Assembly (NCBI GenBank): GCA_048013815.1
Contig: CM106585.1
Location: 20,336,001-20,400,000, forward strand
Source of the DNA: Setoptus koraiensis
Lineage: Eukaryota > Animalia > Arthropoda
Reading direction: 5' to 3'
Length of the DNA: 64,000 nucleotides
The stretch's first letter is position 1. The number at the start of each line of letters is the position of its first letter. The notes under the pieces are model-generated. The model saw only the letters and a program-made list of their open reading frames with translations, was not told where the DNA came from and searched no databases. Positions 1 through 26,900 of this stretch are shown here, one piece after another. Position numbers and translations under genes: made by a program.

Positions 1-3000
1 GGTGGTGGGCAGGGTGAGTCGCTCAATTGAGAACGACGACAACCTGTGGAATAGCTCGTTGTTTGAATTGTTGGTGGCAAACAGATATTGGGTGGCCGCT
101 TCGTATTGGTGGCGAGTGTCCAACAGTTGCTTGTTTTGCTTGTCGTGCACAATTTTAATTTGGTCCTCAATGATGCCAGTGGCATTGAACAATTGCTGGG
201 CCCGGATAAAATTCAATTTCCAATCGGTGCGCGGCTGGCCCGACCGGTGCAACAGAGTCGTCTCTATGCCAATCCTGTCCTCGTCCAATTGTTGCAAATC
301 TCTGTCTAGCTGACGCTTGAGCAATTCAACTTGCTCGATCTGCTCCGACAATTCGCGCGACTCCAATTCGAGCTGGCGTCGTCGTTGGTGCCCCTCTTGG
401 TGTGGCTCGATTGGCGGCCCCATTTGGCGGTCCCAATTTGCGGAGGTGCCCGCGAATTGGGCCCCATTGGCGAGAAACGGATAAAGAAAGTTGCGCACAT
501 CGGACAACAAATCAAACATTGTCTCGTTGTAGGTGTGCGTCGCGCCCAAGAACCTGTCACTGTATATTTTCTCCTGATTGATGGTCCTCACGATGAAGTG
601 CAGCTTTTTCTCTATGTATTCCTCTTGCTCTGGAGTGAGCGAGCCAACCGAAACCGGCGAGGCCCATCGCTTGGCCCTGTCACGCCACCTGTCCAAGCCG
701 TTCAAACTGTCAAAATGTCCCCCGCGAGCGTCCAAACTGTCGGAATGTCCCCCAGAAGCGTCCACACTGTCGAAATGTCCCTCAAAAGCGTCCAAACCGC
801 CGGAATGCGGATGAGCCGATTGTTGGCGCGATTGGCCCGCTCTGAAACTGGCCGACCGGCGATAGCTCACGCTCAACCGGTCAGCGTCGTGCCACAGAGC
901 GGCCACTTTGGCCAGCCACTGGTCGTAGCATTCGCCGCAGCGCAAGCAGCTCTTCGGCGACGGGATATCCTTTAGCAAATTCATGTTGTACGTGTCCATT
1001 GTGAGGCTGTCGTTAGCGTCGGCGCCCTCGTGATGGGGCCCCGATGACCCGCTCGCCGCGCTTGTTGGGCTGGCGAGCGTGGCGGTGGCGTTGAAGTAGT
1101 AGCCCGTGGCGCACTTTTCGCACTTGCTGCCCGTCATTTCGGCCAAACAGTCGCACTGGCCGGTGCTCTTGTCGCAATCCGTGGACCGGGACCCGAACAT
1201 GTTGCAATTGCACATTTTGCACTTGCGCTCGGACTTGGGATCGCCCCAGAATCCGAAGCCGCACTGGTTGCACTTGCGGCCCCCGTAGCCCGGCTTGCAT
1301 TCGCACTGGCCCGTCAGCGGATTGCACGCCCTCAACTGGGTGCCCGCTTGAGAGTTGGCTCCTGCAAACTGGCCATGCCCAGCGCCGGCAGTGGTACCGT
1401 TGGACTGGGCGGTATTTGCGGCGGTTGTGAGCGTGCCCTCGGGGTCGCAATTGCACCGCTCACAACCCACGCCCGCGGTCATATTCCAATAGTTGAGCTG
1501 ACATTGGTCGCACTTGTCGCCCTGTACATTGTCGGCGCACTGACACTGTCCGGTGTGCCTGTCGCAGGGCAAATAACTGTAATTGTTGCTGCCGCTCGGG
1601 TCGTAGCGGGTCCCGTTGGGGTGACACTGGCACGCGCTGCACGATTGTGTCGTGGCATCACCATGATAACCCGGCCGGCACAATTCGCAATGGTCGCCCT
1701 CTGTGTCGTTGGTGCACTTGAGGCATTTGCCCGTATTCTGGTCGCAATTGTGGTGCGCGCTAACGTTCCAATTGTTGTTACATTGGCACATTCTGCAATC
1801 TTTGCCCAACTGTCCGCTCGGGCCCCAATAGTTTGGGGCGCACATTTCGCACATGGCGCCCACAAATCCGGGCTTGCACACGCACTCGAACGCTTGCTGC
1901 TGCTGTTGCTGGTATCTGGTGGTCATGGCACCCAAATCCGCCGGGCCGCCCGCTTCTCTGGGCCCAGCGCCGAGGGCGCCCCCCGCGGCCGGAGCGGACA
2001 GGTTGGTGCGGGTGGCGGGCAACTGAACAAAGTGTTGCAAGTGCGCCAATTGTTGATTGTTGTTTGCGGCTGCCTGCGCGGGCTGCCTGAACGCCCAGCT
2101 CGACCGACACTCGCTGGCGTGATATTCGGGCGATTCGGGCCCGTAACCGGGGCACGAGCAAGCGCTGCAAGCCACGTACACAAGCTGCTCGTTGCTGTTG
2201 GGCGGCGGGATTACAGAGGCCGGGATCATAGACTTGCCCACCGACGATTGAGCGTTGGGCAGCGGCAATATCGGCTGGCCGTAGTAGCCCGGCAGGCACT
2301 CGTCGCAATAGGGGCCCGCGGTGTAATTGGTGCACTGGCGACACTCGCCCGTCGACTGGTCACAACTGGCCGCGTGCCCGTTGCACGTGCACGGCTTGCA
2401 TTCCGGATACGACCAGAAGCCGTCTTGGCACTGGTCGCAGCGACGCCCAAAGGTGTTTTGTTTACATTTGCACTGGCCGCTGACCGGATGACAGCTGGTG
2501 TCTGAGCTGTTGGCCAGATTGAGGTCGCACTGGCACGCGCGACACTCGCCAAATTGCTCAAGTCCGTAGAAGCCCTCCATACAGGTGTCGCATTTGGGGC
2601 CCGTCACGTTGTCCTTGCAGCGGCACAGGCCGCTCACCGGGTCGCATAGGGTCACCGGGGGCTCGCGGCGATCGTCTTGCAGCGAGTGCCCGTCCTCCAT
2701 GGGCGCCAACTGGGTTCCGTCCGGGTGACAGGGGCACTTTTGGCAGCCGTACAGCGGGTCTGCGCTGTAGTTGAAATGACCCGGCAGGCACTGGTCGCAC
2801 GAGAGGCCGCCCACGTTTGCCTTGCACAAACACTGCGACAATTTGAGCGGCGATTTGTCATGCGAGAAGCGCTGTTTCAGTCTGGCCAGAAACGTTTTCA
2901 TTTCTGTCGCATTGGCCAGTCCGTTGTCGTCCGCAAATTGGGGCCCCAATGCACCGTCGCCGCCGCCACCGTCGCCCTGATAACAAAGTGCGCTCCCGTT

Positions 3001-4884
3001 CTGGGTGCCGTGCTCCGTCTGACACTGACACAACTGACAGGCGTCCGGTTCCCCAATCGACTTGTCAGGCGCCCTGAAGAAGCCCATTTGGCACAGGTGA
3101 CACTTGGCGCCCCTCGTGTTGTGCGAACACATCTCGCAAATGCCGCCGCTCGTCTTGTTTGACAGCTCGAACAATTTTGCATCGAATCGGCACTGTTGCG
3201 AGTGATCGTTGCACTGGCATTGTTTGCACTCGAACTGGGGCCGCCAGGGCCAATCATTATAAAATGGCTTGCATTCCTGGCAATTGGCGCCCTGGGTATT
3301 GTGCTGGCATTCGCAGTGCCCGTACACCATGTCCGTCTCTACATGATCTGGCTCGGCGTCGGCAATGGCGTTGTCACTGTCATTTTGTTGCTTGTACAGC
3401 GACGACGCCTCTGCCAGTGAGGCCACTAGTGGCTGTTTTACGCAACGGCTAGAGTGTTCGTTGCAGAAGCACGAGCCGTAAACAAATAGATCGTTGAGAC
3501 CGAAATGATATATTGTCTTGATTCGTTCGTCTTTCATTCTGTCGTGATACCGGCCACGAATACCATTGTCATCGTCGTCGCGCTCATCGTCGTCGTCGTC
3601 GTCATCGGTATTTTCCCGATTCACAAAGGTGGTTTGCTCATCATAATGCTGCAGACGCTTATTGTGGCCATTGTCATCACGATTATTGTGACTATTATGC
3701 TGCAATTCATCGCCCAACGTTTGCAATTTTATCAGATTGATGCGCAAATTTGTTACGCGCATTATCTTTTTCAATTCATGATACTCTTGTATAAGATCCT
3801 CGTTATACATGCCTATGTCGTCTAGCGAGTCCACCAGGGTTCTCTCGCGCTTGGCCACATAGCCCGGAGTGGGCGCCAGCACCTTCATCACGAGCTCGCC
3901 ATCGTCGGACGGATCGAGCGAGGGCAGATCCTCGCAAACGGTCTCGTTGATGCGCCTCTTAGGAGCCTTGCTCACGTTCGGGTAGGTGGCATGACAAGCG
4001 GTTGCATAGTACTGGTAGACGTGCCAAGTGTGGCCAAAATCGAACGATCTCTCGATGGAGGCTTGGGCCGGATAAAAAGAATTGAAGTGCATGATTAAAT
4101 GCGTGAACAAGAACTCGTTCTCCAGATCCAATTGAATAGTGACGTTCTCGGCTCCATTTTCCGCCTGCCACCAGGTGTGTTGCTCAGAGGTGTTGGCCGT
4201 TTGTTGTTGTTGTTCCAGTTGTTGTTGTTGTTGTTGCTGTTGTTGTTGCTGTTCCATTGTTGTTGACCCGTTGTTGGTGGCCGTCAGCAACTCATCCACC
4301 AAGCCCCTGGCATATGTAACATTGTGTTGGCGGTCGTAGCGGCGCCGTTTAATCACTTGACCAATACTGTGATCCTTGGCTGGAAATAACGGTTTGCCCG
4401 TGATGTTTGATTTGCGTGAATCGCACCAATAACAAGTGCGATCCTTGTTACAATAAGTCTGTGGCCTTAATAGACCGCATGTGGACGAGGCACGAATCTG
4501 AGATTCACGGCCAATCAGCAAATTGCCCGTTCTCAGTCCAGTACATAACAGTTCATTTGATGATTGTGCACCGCTTGCACTTGCTGTAGTTGGGCACCTG
4601 TAGTTATTGACAGCATTGTAGCCGGTGGTCAAAGTGGTCTCGCTCAGCTTGTTGGCTGCCAATTGATCAGGAATATCAGGTAAAAATGAATGATATTATG
4701 CAATGTGTTATGTAACGCATACAATTGAGTTGTAATCAACATGTTGCCAGCTCGTAAAGTGCATCATGCGATTCGCAACAAACAGATAGATTCTTCGAGC
4801 TCACTCACCTGAGGCGACAATCACAAACAACAACAGGTGATGAGATAATTGTTGCGCTGATAGTGCTGCCAGCCTGCTGCACAT
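1..4884 (-). CDS. LanB1: Laminin beta chain-like protein (LN + 11 LE repeats + start of coiled coil), 3' end outside the window
   Basis: Exons 4809..4884 (MCSRLAALS...LLLFVIVAS, signal-like) and <1..4655; intron 4656..4808 is GT-AG, phase 1. The frame stays open to the window edge, so it is missing from the ORF track. LN motifs: TGNLLIGR, STCGL, WWQAENG, VTIQLDLENEFLFTHLIMHF, TNLRINLIKLQTLGD. Eleven 8-Cys LE repeats follow, then CGECYDQW and heptad-rich sequence. Confidence 0.9.
703..810. repeat. 30-bp coding tandem repeat (about 3.6 copies) giving a 10-aa repeat GHxDSxDAxG in laminin
   Basis: Units of caaactgtcggaatgtcccccagaagcgtc type start at 703, 733, 763 and 793. Confidence 0.85.
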
Positions 4885-4910
4885 ATTTGCGTTTTAATGA
4901 GCCAATTAAT

Positions 4911-5000
4911 CTTGCCACGTCTTGCCAATTCTTGCCAAATCCTGCCAAATCTCGCCAAATGTTGCCAAATGTTGCCAAATGTTGCCAAATCTCGCCAAAC
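4911..5000. repeat. 10-bp tandem array, 9 copies of (c/g)ttgccaaat, just upstream of the laminin ATG
   Basis: cttgccacgt cttgccaatt cttgccaaat cctgccaaat ctcgccaaat gttgccaaat x3 ctcgccaaac. Confidence 0.9.
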
Positions 5001-5437
5001 GAATATGATTTGTTTGCCGCCCTAATTTCACCATGCCCTATCAAGGGTGAGAATATGTGTGTATTATACGTGCTTTGGTAAGCGTTGGGGTCGAGCGATT
5101 GTCGTGGATTCGAAGAGTCAATCCTTTATTGTTGCTTTCAATATCATCCCTTACTGTTGATTGAATCGCGCAAACAAACAGTTTCATTGTGCAATGCCTA
5201 TCTATTGATAGCCAACAATCATCGAGAAATCAACACAAAATTAACAGTAGTCGATAGGAAACGAGAGAAAGCCAACTAGTCTAGCCAGACCATGGCAATG
5301 TGCTCGCTCTGCTACAGACTGTGAGAAATTAACAAGATTAATGGCAAACACATGCGAACATCATTGTGACGACTCATGCGACCATTATCCTCACTGTTAG
5401 TCGTGAGAAAGAAAATAGCTGACACAACTTGTTGCTG

Positions 5438-5543
5438 CGATCGGCGGCGTTTGCCACATTGAGCTATTGGATCGATCGCCGATCGTCGCCGGCGCGCTGT
5501 TGCAGCCGATCGTCGTCGGCGCTCCGTTGCAGCCGATCGGCGG
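5438..5543. repeat. 27-bp CGATCG-rich tandem repeat (about 2.5 copies) plus extra CGATCG palindromes
   Basis: gccgatcgtcgccggcgcgctgttgca / gccgatcgtcgtcggcgctccgttgca / gccgatcggcgg at 5478, 5505 and 5532; further CGATCG at 5438 and 5473. Confidence 0.75.
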
Positions 5544-6436
5544 GCTGAAAACCAGATGCCTAAAGGCTCTATTCCTCCGATTATCCGATAATTCTCACTA
5601 TACAACTTGTTGGTTAGTTATACTAACTACAAGCGACATAAGCCACGAAATATCGCCGATTGGACGTCGCTGCCGCTCTCAACGGCGCCAGTATGCATGG
5701 TGCAAACAATTGAAAGTGCATTACTCAAACTGTCTGGCTAATCGTAGTTGGCGCCTCATCAATTTCAAGGCTGATTACGTAGTGCCTCCTCGGCCCACCA
5801 GGGCACGCCTTGGCTCGGCGAACGTGCAGCCGGGCTTTTACATTTGTACAATCGATTTAATGCGAATTGTATTAGTGCAAGTGCCAGTGTTGTCGCTCTT
5901 CCTCTCACCAAAATAATCTCGCCGCAAAAACAATTAGTGCGCAGCCTCGCGCCAGATTGCCGGTGTGCTAAGCGCACTGTTTAGTGCAACATGGGTGGAT
6001 TGGGTGAGAAAATTGCAATAATCGTGCCATCAACACAGTGCCGACATCACACTGAGATGCGAACGTTTTTTGCAAATTTACTCACTCAACTTCCGGGAAA
6101 GTGTTTGCGCATATTGAACAACAGATAAAATCAGAACAAAGGATAATAAAAAAAAAGCGCGACAGTATTGAAACGGGCGTTAGCGGGTGCTAACATTTCT
6201 CTGCATAAAAACGTTTGTAACTTGAGCGCTAGAAACAAGTTGCAAACAAAACAATTTTATTGCAGATTTTATTAATAGGCGGGGGAAGGAGTCGAATGTC
6301 TGGCCCCTGTTCAAAACAACCACATGTTTCTCATTAGCCAGCATCGTTTCGTCAGATCTGGTGCACCAATCGTCACTTACTATTTCTGTTGTTATCATTG
6401 CCACATCAGATCGGACATATTCAGAGTAAGACAAAA

Positions 6437-7000
6437 ATGAGGAACAACAACAATAACCGAATGGATCAAGATGGCACAAATGGCGGCAGTGGCGATGGCT
6501 ATTCCTCTGCCGACTCATTGGCTCGCCGAAGAGCTACACGATCGGCGAGAAGAGAGCCTCAAACGGCTAGAAAATCAACCTGCCAAGGACCGCCATTACC
6601 TAGACCCAGACGATCGGCCTTGGTGGGCCGAGCGGCAGTCGAGCCACCACTGGCTGCCGTTGCCAGACCAGCCGGAAGACAAACAGTCAGAAAGTCCACC
6701 TCGCAAGGATCAGCGCCCATTCTACCTAGATGTACCGCTAGAAAGAGGGCCTCGCAAGTAACCATGTCCAGGGAGCAGTTTTTACAGCTTTACCCAGCGG
6801 GAAGCCTGGTCAGAGCCAGAGCCATGTCATCGAACTGGCTGCGACCATATAGAACACCCCAAACAGCAAGAAAGTCTACGTGCCAACCCGGATTTAGGTC
6901 TGACCACATGCCAAGAGGTGGCCCAAGAGGAGGTCCGAAGGGAGGTCCGAAAGGTGGCTCGAAAGGTGGCCCGAAAGGAGGTCCCAAAGGTGGGTCCTGA
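6437..7000 (+). CDS. Small basic protein with three histone H3-tail-like QT(A/V)RKST motifs and a GGPK-repeat tail; no histone fold
   Basis: 187 aa from ATG 6437 (second ATG at 6461). Motifs at 6560-6580, 6680-6700 and 6860-6880 keep the amino acids but use different synonymous codons, which supports coding status. Confidence 0.7.
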   Translation: MRNNNNNRMDQDGTNGGSGDGYSSADSLARRRATRSARREPQTARKSTCQGPPLPRPRRSALVGRAAVEPPLAAVARPAGRQTVRKSTSQGSAPILPRCTARKRASQVTMSREQFLQLYPAGSLVRARAMSSNWLRPYRTPQTARKSTCQPGFRSDHMPRGGPRGGPKGGPKGGSKGGPKGGPKGGS

Positions 7001-9549
7001 GCAAAGCCCAGAATATACTCCGCGATGACGTGAGTTGCTGACGACTGTGGCCAGTATACGGAATGAGAAAAAAAACGCCAAAAAGTAGCCTGAAACAAAA
7101 AAAAACAATCAAAATCAATTCTGATCAATTGCGTGGGCACGTTAATAGATCCGTCCAATTATACTAACCTAACTAATAGCAACGATAAATAAATCTGCAC
7201 GCTTTAATTGACAAGATATAGCGAGTAGTGACTAACGTTGAAAGTCTTGACAACTGACAAGTCATAACTCATTGTAATCATAAGCGTGATTGCGAATGAT
7301 ACATATTTGAACGGCCATTCAAGTAGTCATATGATGATGTTGCATCATGAGGCTATGATGTATATGTAGTGTCACCATCCTTTTTTCTTGAGTGGAAAAA
7401 TACCATATTGTTTACTATAACAAGATTAGTCGCCTGATCGAAATTGAGTTAGTTTTGTATTGTGTTCATAGAGTGAAAGAGGTGGTAATTGTACTGGGAG
7501 GGGGAGAGAGACGCGTAGAGGTAGTTGCTCTCATAGAATAGATCATCATACTATAGATTGAGGATAGTAATAGATTGCAAGCTATAATTGTCTGAAAAAA
7601 TATCACAGATATATCTCGTTGCTTGCGTATCTTGTGAAAGAGTGCGTCTGTGTACGCCGTTTTTAGACCAGAGACAACCTATTAAGTGGGTGTAGAGACC
7701 TTGAGTCTTATCAAGGTCTCTAGCAACCGATGTAATAAATTAATGTTGTTGTTTTCAATAGATTTTCAACTGGGAGGCTGAGCTATTCTCCATGTTAAGT
7801 TCTGGGCACAACTCACACATGCAGGACTTAAGTATTAGCGAGACATTATGACTAGTTGCACCAATCAGTAGAAAATGTTGTAGTTGTTTACACGCCGTGT
7901 TGTGTATCAAAATACCTATGGGGATATCTATCAAAATCAGATCAAATGTCTAACTGAGCAACTGGCGCGTCTTGTGAAGTCGTGTCATGTGTAGTCCTTA
8001 CTTTCGCCTTGTTTTGTCTTGATTCATTTTATATCTTTTTGTTTTAATTTGCTTTGCTATAGTATATTCGGTTCCAGGCCAATGTGTGAATCGTCACATT
8101 CGCGAGTTAGCTATGACAGCAGCTTATGCAAAGGCCCTGCATAATAAAGAGCAAATCAACTTCTTTTTGATTGACTCTCGTTGTGCTCATGGTCTATCTC
8201 CGTGCCAAATAATCTTTGGTCTAACATTGATTGCGTTGCTGTAAAACTATATAGCTTTACATATACTCCTCGTTTGAAGTAGTATTAGGGGTAGTAGTAG
8301 TTTTAGTTTTAGTATAATAGTAGAATAAGCAGAAGTAGATGTTTACCTGCCATCTGGCCTTGATGAACTACTACAATATCTATCTAATATTAAAACTTTA
8401 CTCTTCCATGGTTCAGCTTTTTTTACAATAGTTGCAACTCCTGTGAGAAGTGTCCTCATCGACAGACCAAAATCTTCTACTGTTGTTTCATGAGGACCAT
8501 TATAAATACAGATCCAGATCCAGGCCTAGGCCAACGCCTTTTGCTTTCCGTCATTGGTGTGGCTAAACTTTAGTAGACATCACATGGTATGAATAGTAGC
8601 AGATGAAACATCATATCCTTGAGTAGTTACTCTGAAAGAAGTGATAACAACATAATTAAAAAGTTATTATGACAGGGAATAGAGGATAATGTCATATCCT
8701 TAATGTGATAATAATAGTAATGATAATAGATATTCAACAAAAATACAAACAAACAGACAAAAGCTGCATTTTTTAATGAATACTACTTATTTCGAATGAA
8801 TAATTGTGGCGCACGCAAACTGCACGTACAGCGCGCACTAGTCCTACAACAGACTAAATATTCGCAAGATAAACAACTGGAAATAATGATTCGTGTTGGA
8901 TCATCTTAAACAACATAAAGTCACCAAGATTGAAAACATTTATTTGCAACAATTTTTATAATTTTTTAGAAAAAAAAACTAGCACATCAATAGCAGAATT
9001 CAGCATAGCACTGGGTAGATTTGTCATTGTGAAGCACTATTTGCACTAATTGCACCCGTACGCATCAGCTGACTTGTGTCGACATTAATTGGATGGTCAT
9101 CAGTAGTTGCATCATGAATGTAATATTTTAACAACTCTACTTCATTCTTTATTGCCTATGATCGTTACAGAATCCAACCAAAATTTCACTCATTATCAAG
9201 TCGTCTCAACTCAATGTTTAGCAAGCTCTAGAGAATAAATTAGCCAACAAGCTAGGGCAAGTGAGAGATCTATATTTACATAGCGACGCACTGAATTATA
9301 TTGCAGTAGAATTGTTTGCAAAATACGTCGAACCTCGATACGTCGACTTGTGGGAGGAAGTGAGCAACAACAAAACAAGAAACAAAAGAAAAATTTCGCG
9401 GGCAGCATGAAACTTCGCGCATTCATTATCGTGTGACTTGCCTAATATTGTCAAACTGTATTGCTGCTGCTGCTGTTCTCACACACATAGAAGGTGAATC
9501 CGGCTTGTAACTAAGGCCTCAACAAACACTTAAACACACACACACACAC

Positions 9550-9581
<32 letters not shown>

Positions 9582-10697
9582 TCACTCACATATAGCTGAT
9601 ATTGGCTAGGCGCAACTCGCTAGTCTCTCCGCCAGTAGTCGTTGTTATTATTATTGTTGTTGTTGTTGTTGTTGTTGTTTACAGCTACTCTCCTAAGCTC
9701 ACACAAGCATCTCCATCGCTCATATATCACCGCCAAACAGCCCACTCTTTACTGTGTGCTTTAGTTTTTTTTATCCACATCAGGTTCAAGTTTATCTCAA
9801 ATAACCGAGGCCTATCATAGGAAACTGTATGTGAGAGAGGCTGCTTAATGTACGCTCAAAGTGCTCAATCTGCACACTCTTGACAACAGAAGCAATATCA
9901 GAGGCAACTACAGCACCTAGACATTGATATTTATTTGAGATTCTCTATTTTGAATATTATAACTCGTACGCTTGGAGAGCAGCGCTTATTGGTGTTGGCC
10001 CGCATATAGCTACTGCAGCTACTACTATTGCTACCTTTAGTATAAATACTGTATTTATTATATCAAGTATAAAATAATAATAATATATAAACGTCATCAC
10101 ATAGTCTGCACATTATCAAGGAAACTACGTTAGCACAATATAAACACTAGCACTACTAGCTTTAGCATTATTGTTATTATTATTATATCATAGTTACTCA
10201 ACAGTGACTTAATCTCGAGATCGACCCAGCTCAATATCTAAAGAGACAATACGCTAGATAAATATGAACATTTTCTAAAGACGCGCATACATTTGAGAAA
10301 GGTCACAGAAATATTACTCACATATGAGCGAAAACAAGGAACAATTGTTAAATACTACGTGCATACTCTGTTGTTTGATATTGTTGTTATATCACATCGT
10401 CAACCACAATTGGAGTTCAATATTCCCATTGTTTGTATCAGATACATGTAATGCAGCTAACATTATATAAAGATTACATAGAAGCTACGAGGGCAAAAAT
10501 TGAAAAAATACAATTGTTATATTTTGCTGTATGCCCCCTTTAGAGACCGTTACATCCAACACTGATCATAGTATCATAATATCATTATCATTGTTGTTGC
10601 TGTTGTTGTTGTTATTGCATTAGTATTATGTGATCATCACCAGTTATTCTCAAAACATCAGCTTCTGTTACTCACATTGTTAGTCATTTAATTATTT

Positions 10698-12404
10698 ATG
10701 GACGAAGTGGACTTGAATGATTTACCAAGGGGCCAAAGTTCTGCCTTTGAGGGATCACAAGATAATGATGATTATTTCATAGAGAATAAGAATACAACTT
10801 TACATCCATTTGCTCATCAGGTAAGTGCCATACATATGCCAACTACGACTTTTTATGCACTATATACATAACGCAACAACGTGCTATCCGTATTTACTAT
10901 CCGTCGCTCACTATCTAATCTTCAAACTCATCCAATCATGATCATAATAATCCCAGGTTGGTGGCCATACACAATTATTAACATTAGATAAAAGCACTCT
11001 ATGCAAACCTCTCATTCCAAGAGAGCATCTATTTTATTTGAATGTCCCAAAAGAACTGGTCAAATTTGTGCCATCATACAAAGGAGTTATACAAATACGT
11101 GACACTGGTAGAGGTTACCCACCCCTTGTCTATCAGCCAATTAGGAGTCCAAAATCACCTTTCGGGAAGTGTCTGCCTGGCACAGCATTGTTATCTAGCA
11201 CATTACCAGCCAATTACGGGGCGGAGTTCAATATTTATGAAAATGATGGCAGGTTCCCCAATCTAACAAATTCTCAGTGTACATTGAAAGAAAAAACACG
11301 GACAAACAGCGAGGGCGAAGAGAGTATAAAGGTGGACATATCCACTGACGAGGATAGTTCACATTCATTGAACAATTTCAATACTTACTCGCCCTATGAA
11401 TTAAAGTAAGTATTTCATGCAATAGAGAACAAGGAACAAATTTATCACCAGTTTATGTAAGGTATTAAGCGCAACTTTTATTTCTCAAAAACATCACCAT
11501 CATAGGATCCAGTTTCGACCATGTTCCGATGAGACAATCCTGAAGACAAACCTCTCCAAAAAAGACCCCTCGGAGCCTGATCTAAGTAGTCGTCCAAGTC
11601 AGACGCGTATGTATTCACAATATTAGCGTTATTTTTCAACAAGACGATCAGATATCCGGAAGTTCGTAGTATTAACACATTTTATACCTTTTTTAATTAT
11701 CTTTTTCGTGGCCATCAGATCTCCTACTTCTTGAAAACATCACTTCGAAATATCACCTACCATGCATCTTGGACATGAAAATGGGAACAAGGCAGCATGG
11801 CGATGATGCTTCTGAGGAGAAGAGACTTAGACAAATAGCAAAATGTGAGGCAAGCACTTCGGCCAATCTTGGGGTCCGTCTATGCGGTATGCAAGTGTAT
11901 CAGGTTGATTATGGCGGCTTCATGTGGTTCGATAAATACTATGGAAGAAAATTAGATAGAGAGGGTTTGAAGAAGGCGCTGAGACAATACTTCCATAACG
12001 GCTTACACTTTAATAAAGAAGTAATTGATGATGTAATTGACAGGCTCAAACTATTGAGCGAAGCTATAGAGAAATCTGCCTCGTTTAGGTTTTATAGCAC
12101 TTCATTATTGATTGTTCATGAAGGATGTCCAGGAAAAGTTAGCCAGACCCCAGTCGATGTTCGATTGATCGATTTTGCACATGCAATATGTGCATTTAAA
12201 TTAGAGACGGCAGATGGCAAGACACAACCAAGCAACCATAACAGCAACAGTACCAACAACAATAATATACCTGTTGGACCGGACAAAGGTCTGTTGCTAG
12301 GTTTGAATAATCTGATCGAACTATTGAACGAGCTGAAAGACGAATGCTGTTCCGAAGAATTGGTCACCGATATTATAATAGATGATTGCTCCGATGGACC
12401 TTAA
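10698..12404 (+). CDS. IP6K: Inositol hexakisphosphate kinase
   Basis: Exons 10698..10820, 10957..11405, 11506..11606, 11719..12404 (GT-AG, phases consistent). Motifs PFAHQ|[33 protein letters not shown]. Confidence 0.93.
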
Positions 12405-13290
12405 AGAAGATCAAGAAAGACAAGCAGCTGACAGTTCGAGCTACGAGGCGACATTTCTCTATCAAGAGTTGTTGGTCCACTCTTCTCATTTTAAGATTAC
12501 AGAAATAAGTTAAAGTAATCGTCTTTCCATTAGTATTTATATATACACATGTATAGAATGTTATATCGAAAATTTGTATCGAAAACTATCAAACTATCAG
12601 GCTGTGATCTCTAGCGATAGTCGGGTTAATGATACACACACGCAAATGTAATCTCTTACCCTTCCATAAGGTGATCTTTGGTAAATCTTCGAAAAAATAA
12701 ATAAAAACGAATCTATACACTAAAAGATATTTTAATTTGCTGTGCAGTCAAGCTACAGTATTTATTGTATCTTTGTTATTCTTTCACGAGATCACGATAG
12801 ATTTTTAAATGAAAAATCATTACAATAACTTCAAGTATCTTTTCTTATTTTTCATTAAAACGATATAAACGACACAGTTCTAGATTTATATACAGTAATA
12901 ATAAGTAATTTTCTCACATTTTGAGTTTTAACTTTGAAGGGGCTATCAGAGGTAGGCTTTGAACGATGCGAAATTGAGTTTTCTCCTCGTCATTATCAGG
13001 CAATGCGCGAATCTAAATGATGAGCCATAAGTAGTAATTAACTTTCGTTTTCTTTTTTTATTGGCCAATTATATATTAGCTGAAGGACAACTGACTGTTG
13101 AGCCATGTTAGGTGGTAGAAAACTTTTAAAATTACAAATCTACTTAAACAATAGGTGGCGATATAGAGAGATCTAGTTTTGACATTTTGGCTTACAATTT
13201 ATAAATGGGCAAGAGTTCAATCAAACATTATGACAATATATCCGGGGCGTCACGCATCTCTCGCACAATCGAAATGTAGAGAGATCATAA

Positions 13291-16200
13291 TTAATATAAC
13301 ATTATGACGCCTTCGCACATTGTCCTCGGTGCTCTTTTCTTGTTCGCCGACCACCCGTCAAATTGAACTAATGAAACTATAAAAATGTTAACTAGAAATA
13401 AAACAAACGCAACAACCACTAGATAATAACTATAACCAAACTGAGACCTGCTTTCTGATGTCCAGCCATTCTCCACCTCTTCCTTCGTCAGAACGTTCTT
13501 TTGTAGTTTGTTAAAATACTCCACCATCCAGCATATTAGCGCGACAAGCGAGAAGAAACCTACATCATGGCGATTGATCCGGAAGTGATAGATAATGATT
13601 AATCGCTGGTTTTTCACTTGCTTTCGGAAGATATGGAATACTACAGCCTATCATACACTGTACAAGGACTTACCCGAGAGTGCATTCCATATGATCAGGC
13701 CTAATGGTCCGGATAAAGTTCCGCTGGGTGACATCACAAAATTTATTATGGCGTAGATTGAACCGATCAAACCGAATAGTATGGCTAAGGATACACAAGC
13801 GAGAGTTGCAACCCATAAACGATAAGTGATTAGATCTGAGCCTTTAGATAGTTCATTTTGGACTGTATCATGGAGGTAAAATAAGAAGAAAGTTAGTTGT
13901 CATGATTGTTGTGATGCATTATTTGTGGGCTATTATTTTGATTTGGCCACTGGAAATTTCTTTGCGATTTGTTACTCTTATAATGCTTGTATCATTGATA
14001 GTGATAGCTCTATCTAGTGTTACAACAGTGTAGTATTATTCAAATTGAAATTACACAAATTCTTCAGATACATTCGCTATCACTAAAACAATACAAGCTC
14101 TTATATAGATTGCGGTTGGTTGCTACAGGCAAGCAACTCAAAAAAAGAAATCATGCCGTCAGAATGAACTCATAGGATAACCATTAACACTTGAGCTATG
14201 GTAGTACTTCTTGTAAGAAGATATTGAGACTTGCAGGGAAAACTGATCGAGTAGCGAGTAAATTCTCACGAAGAACCAGCTACTTTATATTGAAACTTTG
14301 TATTCTATTTTGGGAGACACACACAGCCTGAATACAACGATCGAGTTCATAAAACTCTCTTAATTCACTGCCATTTACAGTTACACTCAGAACATACAAA
14401 ACCGTCTATTCAAAAGTCTCTTACGATAACAAATTCAGTTGACCAGCGATACTGAAAATTCGCTTCGAAATCGTCAACTCTTGTATCTCTGTTACATCCC
14501 GATAGTGACTGAATATTGCTGTAATTCAAGGTAGATTCGAACCGCACGTGATTCTATTGTTTTCTGTTCAATCAAATGATCAGCAGATCTAAAGTAGAGT
14601 ATCCATTTACAAATATTCTTTCACAATTTGTCAATAATAACAATGTGCAAAAGCTCTGACATATATTTCTAGGATTCTATGATCTCGTTCGAGTCCGCAG
14701 AAGCATTCCGTCTCGCTAAAGAATCGAGTGACAAGATGAATCTAGAAGTTTTTACGTCAGCGTCATTTCTGTTGGAGGATTCAATAAATTATTAGCGAAG
14801 AAGAAAGGAGACATTTATCGCGACATCTTATGCCAGCGTATTTTGCAGCGCCTCAAACATCTTCAAGCGTCAGTGAGCTGAACTAGGGGAGGGCCAGGTG
14901 GAATCTTTCTCCGTCTACGATTTCCATAGTAAGATGCTCAGAGTTCTATCTGAACCATGTCATCATGAGCACCAAGAGTCGATGATGGATGTCTCATTAT
15001 TGACGGTTTTCATCGTATCTGAAATGGTTTTTGTGTGTAAGGTCCATTCCATTATCAATTACTAGTAACACCACTGACATACTTCAATGTTCTCTCTCAA
15101 TTGAATTAAAACAAAAAGAGGAGAGTTTGATTTAACATAGACAAGAATGAAGAAAAAAAAAACGAAACTAGCTAACCACAATCAAAAGCTGTTGTGACTG
15201 AACAACATTGGGTGTTAGCAATAAAACAAGTTTTTTCTATATACTGCTTCTACTGGCGAGCATAGGTTTTAGTATGCATCATTGATATGCTATCTGGAAT
15301 CTAACTGTCGAACGATGTTTGTGCAAATCAAACGATACTATAGCCAGATAATTATATGTGAATATACATAGCGTCTAATCTTGACCATAACTGCCCTAGC
15401 CTCACTAAGAGACACACACGACATGTGACTGAAGATCAGTATGCTCAGAGTAAATCCCTCCAATTGCTCCAAGACTTCTAATCACTGTCTTTTTCGTGTG
15501 GGCAGAAAACCTTTGATCGACAGAAAATCCGCGAAAACCAACGGATTGCTGACTACCACGTCAAGCCAGTTGTCTGAATCGACAACTAAGACTTTCGCTC
15601 GACCATTGCACAAACTTTTCTTTTGCTCAAATTTATTAATATTATTTTTTGATTAATGCTTCATGTTCCAAATATCAAACATCACTGAGTCTAATCCGCA
15701 CCTGCCTTCTATTTATACGAATTGGGCTAACATTGAAAGCTAGTAGAGATAATCCAGCTAGAGATTTTCTCTTGCCCACAGAAATATAGTCGATATCAGG
15801 TAGGTTCATTGTGTTGGTCAAGCACCTCCTTTGATTGAAGGGTATGTAGGTTTCCAATACGAAAGACCATTCAAAGAGATTTATTATCTGTATAAGAAAG
15901 TGAGTCTAGTTACTACCATGCAAATAATAATGACTATCAGCCTGCCAGAAAACACACAATCAATCACGATGAACAATAACAGTAATAGTTAAATGACAGT
16001 CAGAATTAAATGTTCGAGAGGCGAGGTTCGTCGCCATTGAACATTGCTTGGATGACATCCTCTTTCGTTACATTTCCATCATCTATCTGGTCATATCAAG
16101 CATAGCTTTTAAGATAACTGTTCTGTACAAGTTGTGGAAACTTTTCATCATTTTCCATCTGAGCAAGACAAGAAAACTCTGAGATTCAGCTCTCCTGTGC

Positions 16201-16422
16201 TGTTTGGAGATGCTGACTATAATATATGGCACCAACAAAAACTACAATTATGCCTCAAGATCACTTCATGATGCTTGTTTTGGATATGAAGAATCAGACA
16301 GTTATATTGTGCATATCGAGAGGCTAAAAGCTTTCGTCGGCCAATCAAAGATATTTCGTATGTTAGAAATTGATTCTTTTTGACTAAACTTTTATTCTCC
16401 TTGTGGTACTTACACTGGTAGC

Positions 16423-16475
<53 letters not shown>

Positions 16476-18378
16476 GAAGTGCAAATCGGATTGCAATAGT
16501 TATGTGCAGTATTGTAGTCTGTGTCTAACTGTTTAACTGCAATGATGGATTTGTAAGCTCAGATAGAACACGGTAGAACGGGGATAGATTAATTTCATGA
16601 TACTCTCTCCATTGTGATAGACGATTAAGCCCATAATCATGGAGCAACCTGAGAAGTCAGATCGACTCGCCCTGCTCATTCAACTTTTGACGCTTAATTC
16701 AAGAAATCATCGTCACAGAAAATGATTGATAGTGGAACGAAGTAAAACTCTTTCTCGGGTTAAAAATAATGAAATAAAGGCCAACAAACACGAAGTCGGA
16801 TTTGTGCCAGATTTGACCACTCAATCTAATCTTCAATCATTACATCATGATAGACTGTAGAATATGAGTTGGCAATCTCTAGTTTGAATATATCAAGCTG
16901 CTAGCGCTAGTCGTTGTGATGCTATTAAAGGGGGATCGTTATGATCGCAAATCATATCCTCGTCTTAAGAGTAGGCTCAGAGGAGCTCCTAATAGTGAGT
17001 CACTATTTAAACGTTTATATGATTGAATAACTTGCCTTAGGATTGGCTAACCTACAGTAGTAAATAGACAATAAAAGAAATATAATAATTTGTTCTATCT
17101 GATCCAAGATATCCATCATAACTATTGCACGATACGATGGAATGCTCAATGGAAAAATAGTTGGACTGATTTTTCAGAGTGCCTTCTATGAACTATAATA
17201 ATCTGTTGCGTGAGCTTTGGAGCTTCATCATGAGCCATGTAAGAGAAGAGATAATAAAATCTAAACTATACCTGAGTGCAAAATCTAATTGAAACCGCCA
17301 AAATCTGATGGTTGGAGGTGCACAAGCCAGAAATCTTTATTACATCTTCTTCGAGTCAAGTGCAAGACAACAAGACATCGGTGCTACGCTGAACAAACAT
17401 TCCTATTTCAGAGTACAACTGATAATGATAAAAATTATTATCAGTAGCAGAGACATCAAAAAGCATTACATAATGTTTGGATGTAATCTGATGTTATATT
17501 TTTGTGACGTTATGTCATGTTAGGCTTGATTTCGTGTTGGCTAGTTGCAATGTCTTGAAACATAAACACATGAGAAGTGAATCTAGAAAGAGATTGAGAG
17601 GGAACGATTTATTTATGGCGTGATTCATCAAATCAAAATCTCTTCATGACTTGTTCCATTTTGTGTGCCAGAACTTGTTGGTCACCAGTGCATTAGTATC
17701 TAGTTAGAGGGTGGTAGTAATGGCAACATGATCAAATTGTGGACTGTCTGAGGCAGCTAGATTGTGTGTAAGAGCAAAAAAGAGCTTATCTGAAAGGGCA
17801 GTTACGTCAAGAGTACATCAAGTAGATTAGAACTACATGTGTGAGTAGGAAGTGTAGAATTCATCGCCACTATGGTCAACTAGCCCTGGCAGTATTTGCG
17901 TCGGCAACAATGGCAAGAAAAAAAGCCAAAAAATAAATAGTATCTCGCTAAATTCATTTGGACTGGTTTAAAAACAAGATCGAGGGGTAGTAGTAGTTTA
18001 TGAATATCGCCTCAAAGTAGATCAAGGAAAGTAGCTCATTACTTCAATCAGATCTTCTCGGAAATGTTCACATGTTGATGGTTCTCATTTCGTAAGCTAA
18101 TGCGGTTTTGCGTTAAGGCAAAATTCTGAACCATGAGAGCCAGTCTTGATTATGTTAACAGTGCAAGTGCTCTTGTTAGAAGCTCGAGGACTAACAAATT
18201 GCGGAACAATAATCAAGACAGATCGAGGAATTTCAGGCAATATTGCAACTGTCAGTTGGGCGTTTGCAGTGGTCGTTGTTTTGAGACTCACAAAAGGCAT
18301 TACACCCATTAGGTAACAATGCCTACAACGGAATGGACAATTCCACCAGTTGATAAATGCCTCGAGGCATTAGAATAT

Positions 18379-19557: not shown

Positions 19558-20141
19558 AACATGAACTGAAAGTGGTAAGTGCCACTGCTGCTGCTGCATA
19601 CACACACAACTGGTGTTGCACCAGTTGAGCTGCCACTGCGGCAGCCACACAACAGGAGACACCCTCCCATGCACAATCACACAAACGACCAACATTCTAT
19701 TTGACGAACACATTCTGTCCGAGTGAATAATGGTCAGCGCTGATTGTTCTCTATGGCTTAACCATTCTATTCTGTCCCCCTCGCTTTGCGCCTCCCCGAT
19801 ACAGCACAGTATACTATACTGACTATAGTATTGTATGCAGCGAGCCGCCACTCACAGAGTGGCCAACTCGCACACCAACTCACAACTGTACACAATTCGC
19901 TGTTTGCAACTCACAGTAAACACACTTGCCTCCATGGGAATTCGCATGGGGAGAGCAATCGCTTCGTTCGCCTATACACTGCAGCCGAATCCCGCTGTCC
20001 ATTAAACCAACTATTGTCCAATCCGGCAAACACATCATTTATTTCCCCCCGTCCCAAGCTTGCAAGATTTCCCATGCAAAAGTTTTGGTTCTATAGAACT
20101 AACAAGTTGTTGGGCGCGAAGGTCAAAAAATATGTCTCGAA

Positions 20142-20642
20142 TAGTGATCGGGGGAGCAACTCTGTGCAGGCTCACTTATATTGCTCCCGCAAGTGCTCCC
20201 CGAATCTGCTCCCCGCTCCCGGCCGGGAGCGGGGAGCCTCCCCAGCTCCCGCTCCCCGTCGGGGAGCGGGAGCAAATTCGGGGAGCAAGGGGGAGCAACG
20301 GGGAGCAACGGGGAGCAGCAGGGAGCTATGGAAAACAAGCAGGGAGCTATGGAAAACAAACTTGTGCATGATTTTTGAAAAGAGCGCACATAAAATATTG
20401 GCACATGATTCACTGTTCAAAAATCATGCACAAGTTTGCTTCCCATAGCTCCCTGCTTGTTTTCCATAGCTCCCTGCTGCTCCCCGTTGCTCCCCGTTGC
20501 TCCCCGTTGCTCCCCGAATTTGCTCCCGCTCCCCGACGGGGAGCGGGAGCTGGGGAGGCTCCCCGACGGGGAGCGGGAGCAATGCTCCCCGATGACCGTT
20601 GGGGGAGCGGGAGCGGGGAGCGGGAGGCTCCCCCGATCACTA
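20142..20642. mobile_element. Non-autonomous hAT-type MITE / foldback element (501 bp)
   Basis: Perfect 16-bp TIRs TAGTGATCGGGGGAGC (20142-20157) and GCTCCCCCGATCACTA (20627-20642), starting with the hAT YARNG consensus. Flanking 8-mers GTCTCGAA (20134-20141) and GTCTCGAT (20643-20650) match 7/8, consistent with a TSD. Internal 149-bp inverted arms at 20231-20379 and 20416-20564; many GGGGAGC units. No transposase. Confidence 0.8.
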
Positions 20643-20680
20643 GTCTCGATATGCGACAGTGCACGATACGCACTTGTAAC

Positions 20681-21100
20681 GCGTGCCTAGTGAGCGCGAT
20701 TCGTAAAACATATGATCGATGCAACAGTTGCGGTATTAAAATGATGAAAACAAACAAGCAACTCTCGTCGAGAGAATTAATATCGTTATCCGGCTCTCGA
20801 CCATTAGTAGCTCGTAGGAGGCAAAGATTACGGCACATTGGCAACTCTTCAGCCGATCATGGGCTATGGCGGAGAAATGAGATTGTTAAAACTAAGCAGA
20901 GAAATCAATCCAAAGATCAGAACGCTGGACTCAAGCTGAAATCACCTACTGTGGCTTGCCCATTAGGTCGCTTATACAATAAGAATGCCATTATTGACCA
21001 TCTATTGAGTTCTAGGGATTAGAGGCAAATTAATCAGGCTAAGCGTGTGCAACTGGTTCCAAAACCAGTTCAGCCGAGATTCAAACAATTGTCAGATAAT
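20681..21100 (+). pseudogene. RTF2: Degenerate partial duplicate of the RTF2 promoter and 5' CDS
   Basis: Aligns by eye with about 22422..22902. ATG at 20859 (atgggctat vs atgggctgt), a short deletion at the GGTIPR codons, a deletion at ELSAKWQFCALS, and CAG>TAG at 21020. Confidence 0.85.
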
Positions 21101-21229
21101 ATGTTTCCATTCAACGCGCACCTAAGTCAATTTTTGTTTCGTTTATCTATCATCATCCTATGCGATAATATTGATGGTTATTATGTATTCACAATAGAGC
21201 ACAATATGGATGGAAGCATTAGTCTCTGA

Positions 21230-22411
21230 TCAGATGGTGACCAGTTTTGTCTTTACTGATTTAATAAGCATTAACAATAGCAATGAGATATTCATAATAT
21301 ATAGCAGATAGATAATTTTCTCATCGGGATGTCCACATTCCTTGATAGAATGTTGCGATCGCGTGGATGATAACAGAAGAAAATATGGCATATTCTCAGC
21401 GTATTTATGGTTGTATGAAGACACAGTTATTTCCGGGATTAGTACAAGTGGTTGATGTCCTTTTTGGTGCGTGGTTTGACAATTCATATGAGTATGGCCA
21501 GACAACACCAATCGAGGGTCAAGTTTTTCAAGGATGTACTGAGTTATCGTTTTTGGCAGAACATCCTCCGCTGGTCGATTTGGTTTTCTGACGGTTCTTG
21601 CCATTGAATGAGGGTAGTCGCAGTTTGTGTCGTCATGCCTATGGAGAGGAAAATGAGTTAAGAGAATAGGTCTGGAGTAAGATGCACGCGTTTGTTTGAC
21701 ATCATCTAAATGTCTAGACAGGTAATTTAATTCTATCAACGACTGTGTACAGAGTTCACAAGAATCGTTACCAAACGACATAGAATTAAGAACTATAAAA
21801 TGTACAGATGGTTTCTTTCTAGATGTGACGTGCATTATTGAGTAAGTAGAATTGAATCTATTAATATATCTATAAAGGAGGTTCGGAAAATTCTTAATTG
21901 TATCATGGGATCCGATGTCATGATTGCCGGGAACAAATATAACCTCACGTTTCGTCGTATCTATAGGGAATATTTCCTTGAAATCATCAACATACTGATC
22001 AAAATCACCATCTTTTGAATAAGATCCCTCATCAATTATGTCTCCCAAAAAGACAATAATATCTGGTTCAAAGAGCCGAGTAGTGATTGAGAAAGATTGT
22101 TTCATTTGATGTTCTCTAATTTGCTTGTCAAACCAGACAGAATTTCTTTTACCCATTATATGAACATCTGTTATCACCATAATTTTCACCACTCCGTCGA
22201 ATGATCGACTGCTGAGGTTACCAACTGCGGGCCAACCGCAAAAGGCTAGATACTTATAGTAGTAGTAGCCATATTCACACCAAACCAGATTTAATAACGT
22301 TATGAGGAGCACTATCAAACGTTTATTCCTTGGTGGTATCTCTATTTTGCTTCTGATCATCGCTGTAATGTGCAATCTTTCCAGTAGTGGAAGGAGGTTT
22401 GTCCATATCAT
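21230..22411 (-). CDS. MPPE1: Metallophosphoesterase 1 (PGAP5/Cdc1 family), single exon
   Basis: 393 aa. DVH, GDIIDEG, GNHDIG, THFP and SGHTH calcineurin-like motifs; N- and C-terminal TM segments. Confidence 0.9.
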   Translation of the reverse strand: MIWTNLLPLLERLHITAMIRSKIEIPPRNKRLIVLLITLLNLVWCEYGYYYYKYLAFCGWPAVGNLSSRSFDGVVKIMVITDVHIMGKRNSVWFDKQIREHQMKQSFSITTRLFEPDIIVFLGDIIDEGSYSKDGDFDQYVDDFKEIFPIDTTKREVIFVPGNHDIGSHDTIKNFPNLLYRYINRFNSTYSIMHVTSRKKPSVHFIVLNSMSFGNDSCELCTQSLIELNYLSRHLDDVKQTRASYSRPILLTHFPLHRHDDTNCDYPHSMARTVRKPNRPAEDVLPKTITQYILEKLDPRLVLSGHTHMNCQTTHQKGHQPLVLIPEITVSSYNHKYAENMPYFLLLSSTRSQHSIKECGHPDEKIIYLLYIMNISLLLLMLIKSVKTKLVTI

Positions 22412-22611
22412 ATGTGTGGTTGCGTTCCAATGAGCGCATTTTGGAAATCATATGATCGGTGCAATAATGATTTTACAAAAAATGATGTGCCACACAAGCG
22501 ACCCTCGAGCATTTGTGTTGTTATCCAGATCACAATTATCGGTTGATTAACTATTAACTCACAAGAGTCAATTACGTAGATTGCGACAGAATAACAATTC
22601 TTCTGCCAACC

Positions 22612-23921: not shown

Positions 23922-26900
23922 CTATCTAGCCTTCTCTTGAGGCAACAACACCACCACTATAGGATTGTCTTGATTACCGCGTGAAGAGGAACCACTCCTA
24001 CGATTTCCATTACTTGTTAATCTCAAAGCTGTATCGATAGCTCTAATACTTTTGCTCGATCGACTACTTCTGCTATTGCTACCGGCCTCAGAATTGGAAT
24101 CATCGCTGGGCTGGACCCTCTGACCAAAACTGTTTGATCTGGACCTGTGATGATCAGATGAGAATCTGGTAGACTTGATTTTGTCGTTTGCTTTACCAAC
24201 CGAAACTGGACTTGATGCGCCCGATTTTTCTAGAGCTTCTTTGTAGGAACTGGACACCGTCTTGACGGCCAATCTCACATTGTTGGAACTGAAATCGACC
24301 TTCTTTAGCATCATCTGATTGAACACCAATCTGACTAGGTTCATCTTTTCATCATTGTCGACTTTTTCTCCACTGGTATTCATCACTTTCATCAATTGAT
24401 TTGACATTAGATTTACAAGAGTCTTGTTTCTCATTAGTTTATCTATCAGTTCATCATTCAGCAACATGGGTTGCTGTGCACCGGATGACACTATAGCCGA
24501 TGCGTCCGGCACAAGACTAACTGCAGTGGTCGTTGAGTCCAGCGAGTCATTTATTTCGCCCGATGATGTCGTCGGAGTTGTTGTGCTGGTGAAAGCGGAA
24601 GTAGACTTGATGTCGCTCATACTGGCACCAGGATCTGCATTGGCTACTGCTGGCTGTTCGTTGGAATTAGAGTTTGGCAACTGTGATAAAATTGTCTCGG
24701 GCGTTGATATTGAATTCATGCTACCAGCATCGGGCCAGTCGTTCAATTGAGTGAACGACATACCATCGTTGCCCATCCCTGTAGTGGACATAGCTTGGCC
24801 ATCTTCACTCGTCAATATTCCCGACAATAATGTTGTCGTTGGTTCTGGTGCCGATGTTGTGGTGGTGGTGACAGGCTGCTCTGTAGTGGTGGTGGTGACA
24901 GGCTGCTCAGTAGTGGTAGTGGTGCTGGTGGTGCTAGTAGTGGTGGTTGTTGTGCTTGTTGGTCGCGATTTCCTTGTCATCTCTTGCGCTTGCTTGGCCT
25001 GTTTCTGTGAAGCTTGTTGTTGCACATTGTTGTTGCTAGCCTGTGATGTGGCCTGCGACAAAATAACTTTGGCCGAAGTTTTCTGCGTTTGTTGTCGCTG
25101 AGACAGAGCCGGTGGCGGGGGCGGTTTGCTGGTCATTGCTCGTCTGGTCATGGTTGGCGGTTTCATAGAGGTCGTAGATGAGCTGCTCAAGCTGGCCTCC
25201 TCCTCGGATGGGTTCGCATCGAATTCTGGCACGGGCGATGATGTGGACGATGACGTCGATCCACTGGTGCTCGATTGCGCAACGGGCAAAGGTGAGCTTG
25301 TGCTGGCAAAAATGTCCACCGACGATTGATCGTTGCTGGATTGAGTGGTGGTGCTGGTGGTAGTAGAGGCAGCCGTTGTTAAATCGTCGTCCAGTGGCTC
25401 CAGCGGCTCAAGTGGCAATTCCGTGGTAGTGGTGGTAGAGGTTGTTGTTGTGCTTCCTTGTTTTGTCTTTTTCTTTTTCGGCGGCACTGAACTGGCCGTA
25501 GTGGTAGTTGTGGTTGTTGAGGTGGTTGTGCTAGGCTCCTCCTCTTCTTCTTCGGCCTCTGTAGTGCTGGTGCTGGTAGAAGTGGAAGTTGTCGATGATG
25601 GCTCCTCTTTTTCCGTTGTCGAGCTACCGCTAGTTTCTGTTGTCGAGCTACCGCTTGTTTCTGTGCTAGAGCTAGGCTCGCCCTCGACCTCTAGAGTTGT
25701 GCCGCTAGACGACGAGGAGCCCTCAGTTGTGGAACTAGATGGGGTGTCGCCATCGCCGCTGCCGGTTGTTGTGGTTGTTGGCTCTGTAGTGGACGAGCTG
25801 GATGAGTCACTAGTTGAGTCGGTTGTTGTAGTGCCCTCGCTTGTTGACGACGATTCTGTTGTGGTGGTAGATGAATCGCCGTCAGGCGACACCGTTGTTG
25901 TCGTGCTAGTAGTAGTGGTGGTTGTCTTTGGCTTCTTGGTTGTTGTAGAGTTAGATTTTGAATAATCTCTTCCGTAGCCGTTGCCGTAGCCGTGACCATA
26001 GCCATAACCGTAGCCGCTTGTGTCCTTGAGATCTGGATCCATCCATTCGTCGTCGTGTGTATAGTTGCCCGTGTTATTCAAGAATATGGGCTTGTTGATG
26101 ACATGCAACAATCTCTGGCGATTCTTGGGCCTCTTGGTCGTGGTAGACGAGTTTGCTTGATGAATGGATATTCTTGGTTTCAAGAACAGTATCACCTTTG
26201 AGCGTTCGCGTTTATCGTGTGCGCCAGGCTCGTATTTTTCCACCTTGGTTGCGTAATCGTTCTTATTGTAGCCGTCGCCGTAGCCGTTACTGTAGCCATT
26301 GCCGGCACCATTACCGTATGCATTGCCGCCGTAAGACGAACTTGAGGCCGCCGAGTTTGAGCCGTATCCGGAGCTGGACGGCGCATATCCGTTGGCGGCG
26401 TATTTGGCCTGCAAATCTGGTTGCGACGAATATCCGGCACTTTTGCCAGCGACACTATGATAACTTTTGGCCGCATTATTGGAGCTGTAAGCCGGGCCGG
26501 ACGATTGATTGTCCGCGTCATATTGTGCTTGCTGCACGGGCGCATAATCTTGGTGGGTATTATGCGCCGATGGAGCGCCCACATAGTTACTTTGCTGATA
26601 TCTGCCGCTACCTGGCTGCTGATACAGGTCGTGTGCCGGTACCTGTTGCTGTTGCTGTTCATGATAATGCTTGCTAGTGAGCGGATAGTGTTGGCTTTCC
26701 GAAGGCTTAAGTGCGTACGACTTGACATTGTCCGACGACGAATAGTCAGCGTCGAATATTGGCTGCCCGTTGCCTATCTGATACCTGGTGTTGGCCAGGT
26801 GAACATTGTGCTGCCTAGCCGAGCTGTTGTCGAGCGAATTGTTGGGCAACTCCACTATGGGTCCCCAAATGGGCTGCTTGGGGCCCGGCGGGGAGGCCGG

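Follow-up and report, generated by a model that had tools for sequence, protein, structure and literature searches.

A putative orphan gene with three copies of a histone H3 K9/S10-like peptide: a candidate H3-tail mimic

Does an open reading frame (ORF) that repeats the K9/S10 patch of histone H3 outside any histone encode a real protein, and if so, could that protein act as a mimic of the H3 tail? The question is raised by a forward-strand ORF at 6437-7000 of the 64-kb stretch of DNA analysed here (64,000 nucleotides in full, referred to as the window). The features discussed below are collected in Table 1.

Table 1. Coordinates of the ORF, its internal repeats and the flanking genes (positions in the window)
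Feature	Position	Strand	Description
Laminin-EGF-like gene	895-2625	-	Upstream of the ORF
Single-exon ORF	6437-7000	+	187 aa + stop; ATG 6437 to TGA 7000
Repeat copy 1	6557-6586	+	PQTARKSTCQ; H3 5-11 (QTARKST) at 6560-6580; DNA repeat search
Repeat copy 2	6677-6706	+	RQTVRKSTSQ, A7 to V; QTVRKST at 6680-6700
Degenerate fourth copy	6734-6757	+	TARKRASQ (CTARKRAS at 6731-6754); 79% nt identity to copy 2 over 19 nt
Repeat copy 3 and upstream residues	6848-6886	+	YRTPQTARKSTCQ; H3 2-11 except K4 to P; QTARKST at 6860-6880
C-terminal tandem array	6911-6994	+	7 x 12 nt, P(R/K)GG with one SKGG unit; repeat search
Candidate splice donor	6990-6995	+	GTGGGT after AAG, phase 1, 3 codons before the stop; read from the sequence
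Candidate polyadenylation signal	7188-7193	+	AATAAA, ~190 nt past the stop; read from the sequence
IP6K (inositol hexakisphosphate kinase) gene	10698-12404	+	3.7 kb downstream of the ORF
IP6K ATG exon	~10698-10868	+	
IP6K N-terminal coding part	~10954-11406	+	
IP6K main IPK-domain exon	~11700-12404	+	

Repeat copies and predicted structure of the product

The ORF begins with an ATG in the context caaaaATG and encodes a 19.9 kDa product that is rich in R, G, P, S and A. The product has a pI of 11.95, with 37 K+R against 8 D+E; at a K+R share of 20% it is basic but far under the protamines. The AF2 model has a mean pLDDT of 51 and a pTM of 0.15 and contains two short helices only, and the product is accordingly modelled as an intrinsically disordered chain without a predicted fold. 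Pfam gave no match at E<=10, and no histone-fold signature was observed on either strand, in any frame, across 3-19 kb of the window. An earlier note on this DNA, made from the letters alone, had said that no histone fold is recognisable in the ORF or downstream of it, which agrees with the low pLDDT, the lack of a Pfam family and the lack of a fold exon nearby. In view of the missing fold signature across 3-19 kb, we reject the possibility that the ORF is an exon of an H3 variant. Neither a histone fold nor tail homology to H3 1-40 beyond the short motif was found, so the product does not belong to the H3 family (PF00125).

The H3-like copies named in the earlier note, QTARKST twice, QTVRKST once and a weaker CTARKRAS, are all located at the positions listed in Table 1. 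The H3 peptide used for comparison was taken from PMC2175347, and the H3 1-40 string was confirmed in the literature. A degenerate DNA pattern for QT[AV]RKST matches the 64-kb window three times, each time inside the ORF, compared with an expectation of 0.00 from 100 dinucleotide-preserving shuffles of the window. A six-frame scan of the window found no further H3-tail-like site outside the copies in the ORF.

The heptamer is indeed present three times, as had been noted, but the true repeat unit is longer. From DNA identity alone, it consists of 10 residues, [P/R]QT[A/V]RKST[C/S]Q, defined by a 30-nt family at 6557, 6677 and 6857 with spacings of 120 and 180 nt. RKRASQ at 6740 belongs to a further family, of 19 nt, and the fourth copy thus has the [S]Q extension too. 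The selected motif is therefore wider than the H3 identity on both sides: the P before the motif and the [C/S]Q after it are not features of H3. The H3 likeness itself spans residues 5-11 in the motif and residues 2-11 in copy 3, where YRTPQTARKST is part of a segment with 10/18 residues identical to H3 1-18. The earlier note had confined each copy to the region of K9, S10 and T11. This is correct downstream of the heptamer, where anchored alignments of the flanks with H3 12-40 are no better than shuffles (P 0.36-0.95), but not upstream, since copy 3 matches H3 2-11 apart from the change of K4 to P. An extended H3-tail homology of copy 2, with K9-like and K27-like spacing, looked attractive by eye and was rejected because it scores no better than shuffles.

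Two of the four copies have the core ARKS, one has VRKS and one ARKR. The EHMT core motif [GCSAKLN]RK[TGQSVMALNKER] is matched by three of the four sites; copy 2, with V at -2 of its VRKS, lies outside it. In all copies the target lysine is kept, with no replacement by Met or Ile as in EZHIP-like K-to-M inhibitors.

Close to the stop codon, the tandem array comprises two PRGG units and five KGG units. We take the KGG-rich part to be loosely like the GKGG lysines of the histone H4 tail, with Pro, not Gly, preceding each lysine; this likeness probably reflects no more than low complexity.

Selection on the peptide in the sense frame

Copies 1 and 3 encode the same decapeptide from DNA that differs at 6 of 30 bases, and every difference is synonymous. 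When all three copies are aligned, 0, 2 and 6 of 9 columns vary at codon positions 1, 2 and 3, respectively (Fisher p=0.006), and the chance that five random substitutions in the 21-nt core would leave the peptide intact is 4e-4. A similar bias is observed in the P(R/K)GG array, where 4/4 third codon positions vary versus 2/8 of the others. The antisense frame that shares the wobble positions reads WQVDFLAV*, CEVDFLTVC and WHVDFLAVW at the three copies, less conserved than the sense reading, and the antisense reading of the array is also less conserved than the sense. Four stops interrupt the antisense frame over the region, and only the sense frame is open throughout. Thus, the synonymous differences to which the earlier note had drawn attention are real, and its claim of selection on the peptide holds up.

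The DNA around the motifs gives a complementary picture. The motif blocks are 70-77% identical, and motif-less 60-nt units in the same register match at 0.15-0.40, where the background averages 0.27. The halves that follow the motif have diverged to 0.27 between copies 1 and 3 and 0.23 between copies 2 and 3, and those of copies 1 and 2 still match at 0.43. Taken together, the silent differences and the divergence of the flanks to background suggest that the peptide has long been under selection in the + frame. An ancestral 20-aa tandem array, prompted by motif distances of 40 and 60 aa, was considered as well and discarded because the motif-less units have no residual similarity.

The limits of the ORF coincide with a change in composition: GC climbs from ~0.38 to 0.50-0.585 over ~6400-7100 (200-nt windows), and within the ORF the GC content by codon position 1/2/3 is 0.54/0.67/0.47. 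Shuffling the local 1 kb produced an ORF of this length in 0.35% of cases. Several overlapping ORFs occupy other frames of the locus. Considered jointly, the silent-site, frame, flank, GC and ORF-length evidence argues that the sequence has been translated and selected in the sense frame. Judged from the sequence, we consider it quite likely that the ORF is a real gene, and it is probably a lineage-specific orphan.

Genomic neighbourhood and searches for relatives

The window is an ordinary gene-dense region made up mostly of long single ORFs, and a single-exon ORF at 6437-7000 fits this local pattern because its neighbours are largely of the same kind. Besides the laminin-EGF-like gene and IP6K, the neighbours include an MPPE1-like phosphoesterase, RTF2, a kinase, Paf1, RRP5, a GABP-alpha/Ets factor and others. 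The closest named relatives of the IP6K are from ticks and a pseudoscorpion, consistent with a chelicerate. In a more distant relative (L002/L003), the laminin-EGF-like homolog comes immediately after IP6K, on the same strand. The order of this gene thus differs between the two, placing the QTARKST ORF in a rearranged junction.

A congener contig (L001) aligns to window positions 9834-18372 with 77% nucleotide identity over 8.9 kb, and ends 2.8 kb short of the ORF. The ATG exon of IP6K at ~10698 is matched by an exon called in the congener. The ORF is independent of IP6K: we rejected it as a 5' exon of that gene because IP6K has its own ATG exon and because neither the IP6K N-termini of relatives nor their upstream DNA contains a similar sequence. 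Four relatives' contigs (L002-L005, IP6K identity 76%) have no ortholog in the DNA upstream of IP6K; one weak tblastn match there was not real.

Protein searches gave no homolog. In a word-indexed search of 5.8 billion proteins, two entries (P0001 and P0004) match only the low-complexity GGPK tail, and phmmer against 1.84 billion representative proteins yielded no homolog of the product. The PDB sequences contain no relative of the whole product or of two sub-stretches, the ESM Atlas contains none either (best score 0.61), and an exact-product look-up showed that the ORF is not recorded as a called gene. Among metagenome contigs, none was recovered by the peptide patterns or by the QTARKSTCQ DNA pattern. 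The protein collection that includes the congener's IP6K, whose DNA next door is 77% identical, has no match to the product. This absence is mild evidence against a conserved intact ortholog, and a gap in assembly or gene calling gives the same result; the congener may lack the ortholog or have it in broken form, or the ortholog may have gone unassembled or uncalled.

In sequencing runs that contain DNA of the locus, 100% of the sampled words for the ORF are present and 76-95% of those for the ORF with its flanks, a pattern that transcript-bounded contigs would produce, as would conserved coding DNA between polymorphic flanks. In four RNA runs there are no reads on the ORF, nor on the exons of IP6K, and the source organism is absent from them; the species label that these runs carry probably belongs to a host or to a species sampled alongside.

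Several other features of the window were observed. Around the laminin-EGF-like gene, a GC-rich block (1-4000, 57-58% GC) has open frames in all six frames. Three simple repeats are present: a 10-nt TTGCCAAAT-like tandem repeat of ~11 units at 4898-5007, a GC-rich 27-nt tandem repeat of 2.3 units at 5478-5539, and an AC microsatellite at 9522-9593 with an adjoining TTG run at ~9650-9679, just upstream of the start of L001. Further downstream, the MPPE1-like metallophosphoesterase is a single ORF (21230-22411, -) between IP6K and RTF2. The interval 20141-22580 is almost wholly missing from the syntenic stretch of L001, and the closest MPPE1-like homolog (P0125, 79%) sits on another contig than L001, indicating that a segment the size of a gene was inserted, lost or moved between close relatives. 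Two minus-strand ORFs, 23922-27878 (1318 aa) and 28358-29878 (506 aa), have no Pfam match and a strongly skewed composition (AT skew ~-0.3); in the congener, a counterpart of 1370 aa lies at the edge of L001. For the 302-aa ORF at 40161-41066 (+), Pfam gave no family at E<=0.001. Around the ORF at 6437-7000 there were neither terminal repeats nor transposon domains, and it is not obviously transposon cargo.

Candidate mechanism, rival readings and known histone mimics

If the ORF is translated, what would its product do? Mimicry of the H3K9/S10 tail is the best-supported mechanism, although we hold it tentatively and at somewhat less than even confidence: the product may be a multivalent mimic that competes with H3K9 factors or scaffolds them. 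This proposal draws on the identity to H3 5-11 and on published data for G9a and chromodomain recognition. Substrate recognition by G9a involves TARKSTG, and the methylated ARKT of G9a binds HP1 (PMC2175347). The hexapeptide H3 5-10 is sufficient to form a crystal complex with an HP1-type chromodomain (PMC8861120). By these published data, QTARKST covers six of the seven residues of the G9a heptapeptide (G12 is C or S here) and the whole of the chromodomain hexapeptide, which suggests that the conserved block covers the stretch recognised by G9a and by HP1-type chromodomains.

In the mechanism we propose, a lineage-specific single-exon gene would be transcribed to give a ~20 kDa, strongly basic and disordered protein, probably nuclear. 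Its functional elements would be the three to four copies of the short linear motif [P/R]QT[A/V]RKST[C/S]Q, whose core is identical to H3 5-11, and the machinery that acts on the K9/S10 patch of H3 would engage them. H3K9 methyltransferases might use the motifs as substrates or be competed by them, chromodomain readers might bind once the lysine is methylated, and phosphorylation of the motif serine by Aurora-type basophilic kinases might switch reader binding off. As a flexible chain bearing several copies, the protein could either titrate H3K9 factors or bridge them. Taken further, an endogenous, domain-less protein that presents three to four copies of H3 5-11 could be a tunable sponge or scaffold, the counterpart of EZHIP in the H3K9 pathway, with H3K9 methyltransferases, HP1-type chromodomains and the S10 kinase as its joint targets; we regard this as unlikely, if a long way from negligible.

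The features of the motif that are not shared with H3 complicate this interpretation. Because the conserved P and [C/S]Q are absent from H3, the partner of the motif may be something other than an H3 reader or writer. The lack of H3 likeness past the heptamer, the position of copy 2 outside the EHMT core and the lack of any homolog also count against mimicry. The gene could be real, and the repeat a different short linear motif, such as a basophilic-kinase site (R-K-S-T), with no role in the H3K9 pathway. The protein would then be a basic nucleic-acid-binding protein, for example a basic protein of sperm or of the nucleus, or an RNA binder resembling RGG proteins, and its identity to H3 5-11 would be historical, from a captured tail fragment, or coincidental. 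The pI, the composition rich in R, G, P, S and A, and the terminal array of seven P(R/K)GG units are all in line with such a protein, as are the non-H3 residues of the conserved unit, the RKRASQ of the fourth copy and the restriction of H3 likeness to seven residues; moreover, the minimal RK core is present in >17,000 human proteins (PMC10611923). What weighs against it is that a selected 7-mer is very unlikely to match one of ~34 H3-tail heptamers by chance, that a kinase site would not require Q5, T6 and A7 to be retained, and, for a sperm basic protein in particular, that the share of K+R is far below that of protamines. On balance we find this reading somewhat unlikely, though it is a rival to be taken seriously.

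The remaining alternatives would take the function, or the independence, of the ORF away. It might be an untranslated relic, for example of a mobile or duplicated sequence bearing an H3 tail, or a chance ORF in the GC-rich patch between the laminin-EGF-like gene and IP6K. Such a sequence would be expected to have no homolog, no record as a called gene and no match in the congener's protein set, as observed, and to lack transcript evidence; overlapping ORFs in other frames also fit, and at the shuffle frequency given above an equally long ORF is not vanishingly rare genome-wide. Yet two independent internal repeat families have a silent-site pattern that favours the sense frame, the motif was kept while its flanks decayed to background, which needs selection, and the GC island and the 3-periodicity match the limits of the ORF, with no transposon domains or terminal repeats. 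A non-functional origin is therefore, in our view, quite unlikely. Still less probable, and improbable by any measure, is that the ORF belongs to a larger gene, to which it would be spliced from the candidate donor at 6990, whether as an exon for the tail of an H3 variant or as an alternative 5' exon for IP6K. The sequence AAG/GTGGGT at 6989/6990 and an IP6K on the same strand 3.7 kb away would permit this, but there is no histone-fold signature within 3-19 kb in any frame, IP6K begins with its own ATG exon, and the IP6K N-termini of relatives show nothing similar.

If H3K9/S10-tail mimicry is the correct reading, no cleaner natural mimic of K9/S10 would yet be known than this product, which would be nothing but repeated exact H3 5-11 peptides. 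It could reveal by what means an arthropod-like lineage of compact genome buffers the readers and writers of its heterochromatin. Antibodies against H3K9me or H3S10ph should then also detect a non-histone band of ~20 kDa in this organism. If the ORF is untranscribed, it is merely a curious relic.

How would such a mimic compare with those already described? Histone H3 itself is identical to the motif over residues 5-11, and to copy 3 over residues 2-11 except K4, but the product has neither a histone fold nor the ARTK N-terminus, and its motifs are internal and repeated. Known histone mimicry consists of single, loose ARK(S/T) cores in large proteins and of one disordered inhibitor, EZHIP, in the K27 pathway. 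G9a/GLP (EHMT2/EHMT1), WIZ, CDYL, LIG1 and ATF7IP also carry an A-R-K-S/T core in a disordered non-histone stretch (PMC2175347, PMC10611923). These substrates share the 4-residue core only, with one motif each, and are large folded proteins with other functions, whereas the product described here has a 7-residue identity to H3 (10 in copy 3), three copies with a weaker fourth, and no domain. For SETDB1, which is automethylated on H3K9-like motifs, and ADNP, with its ARKS motif, more than one H3K9-like motif is reported to govern the interaction with chromodomain proteins (bioRxiv 10.1101/2025.10.22.683908; PMC3022755); those motifs sit inside large enzymes or transcription factors, and they differ from exact H3 heptamers.

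In architecture the closest parallel is EZHIP (CXorf67), which is likewise lineage-restricted and disordered, with a histone-tail-like peptide as its sole conserved element. EZHIP is an H3K27M-like inhibitor of PRC2, expressed in germ cells, whose peptide acts on a histone methyltransferase (PMC6513997, PMC12842176). The two proteins have no sequence relation. EZHIP has one copy that corresponds to the K27 region, with lysine replaced by methionine, while the present ORF represents the K9 region, keeps the lysine and is multivalent. Since the K9-region lysine is retained, unlike in EZHIP, the product would be a substrate or decoy rather than an inhibitor. By analogy, then, the putative protein may be likened in its action to the H3K9 mimics of G9a/GLP, WIZ and LIG1 and in its architecture to EZHIP; what appears new, as read from its sequence, is the combination of exact 7-10 residue identity to H3, three to four copies and a retained lysine.
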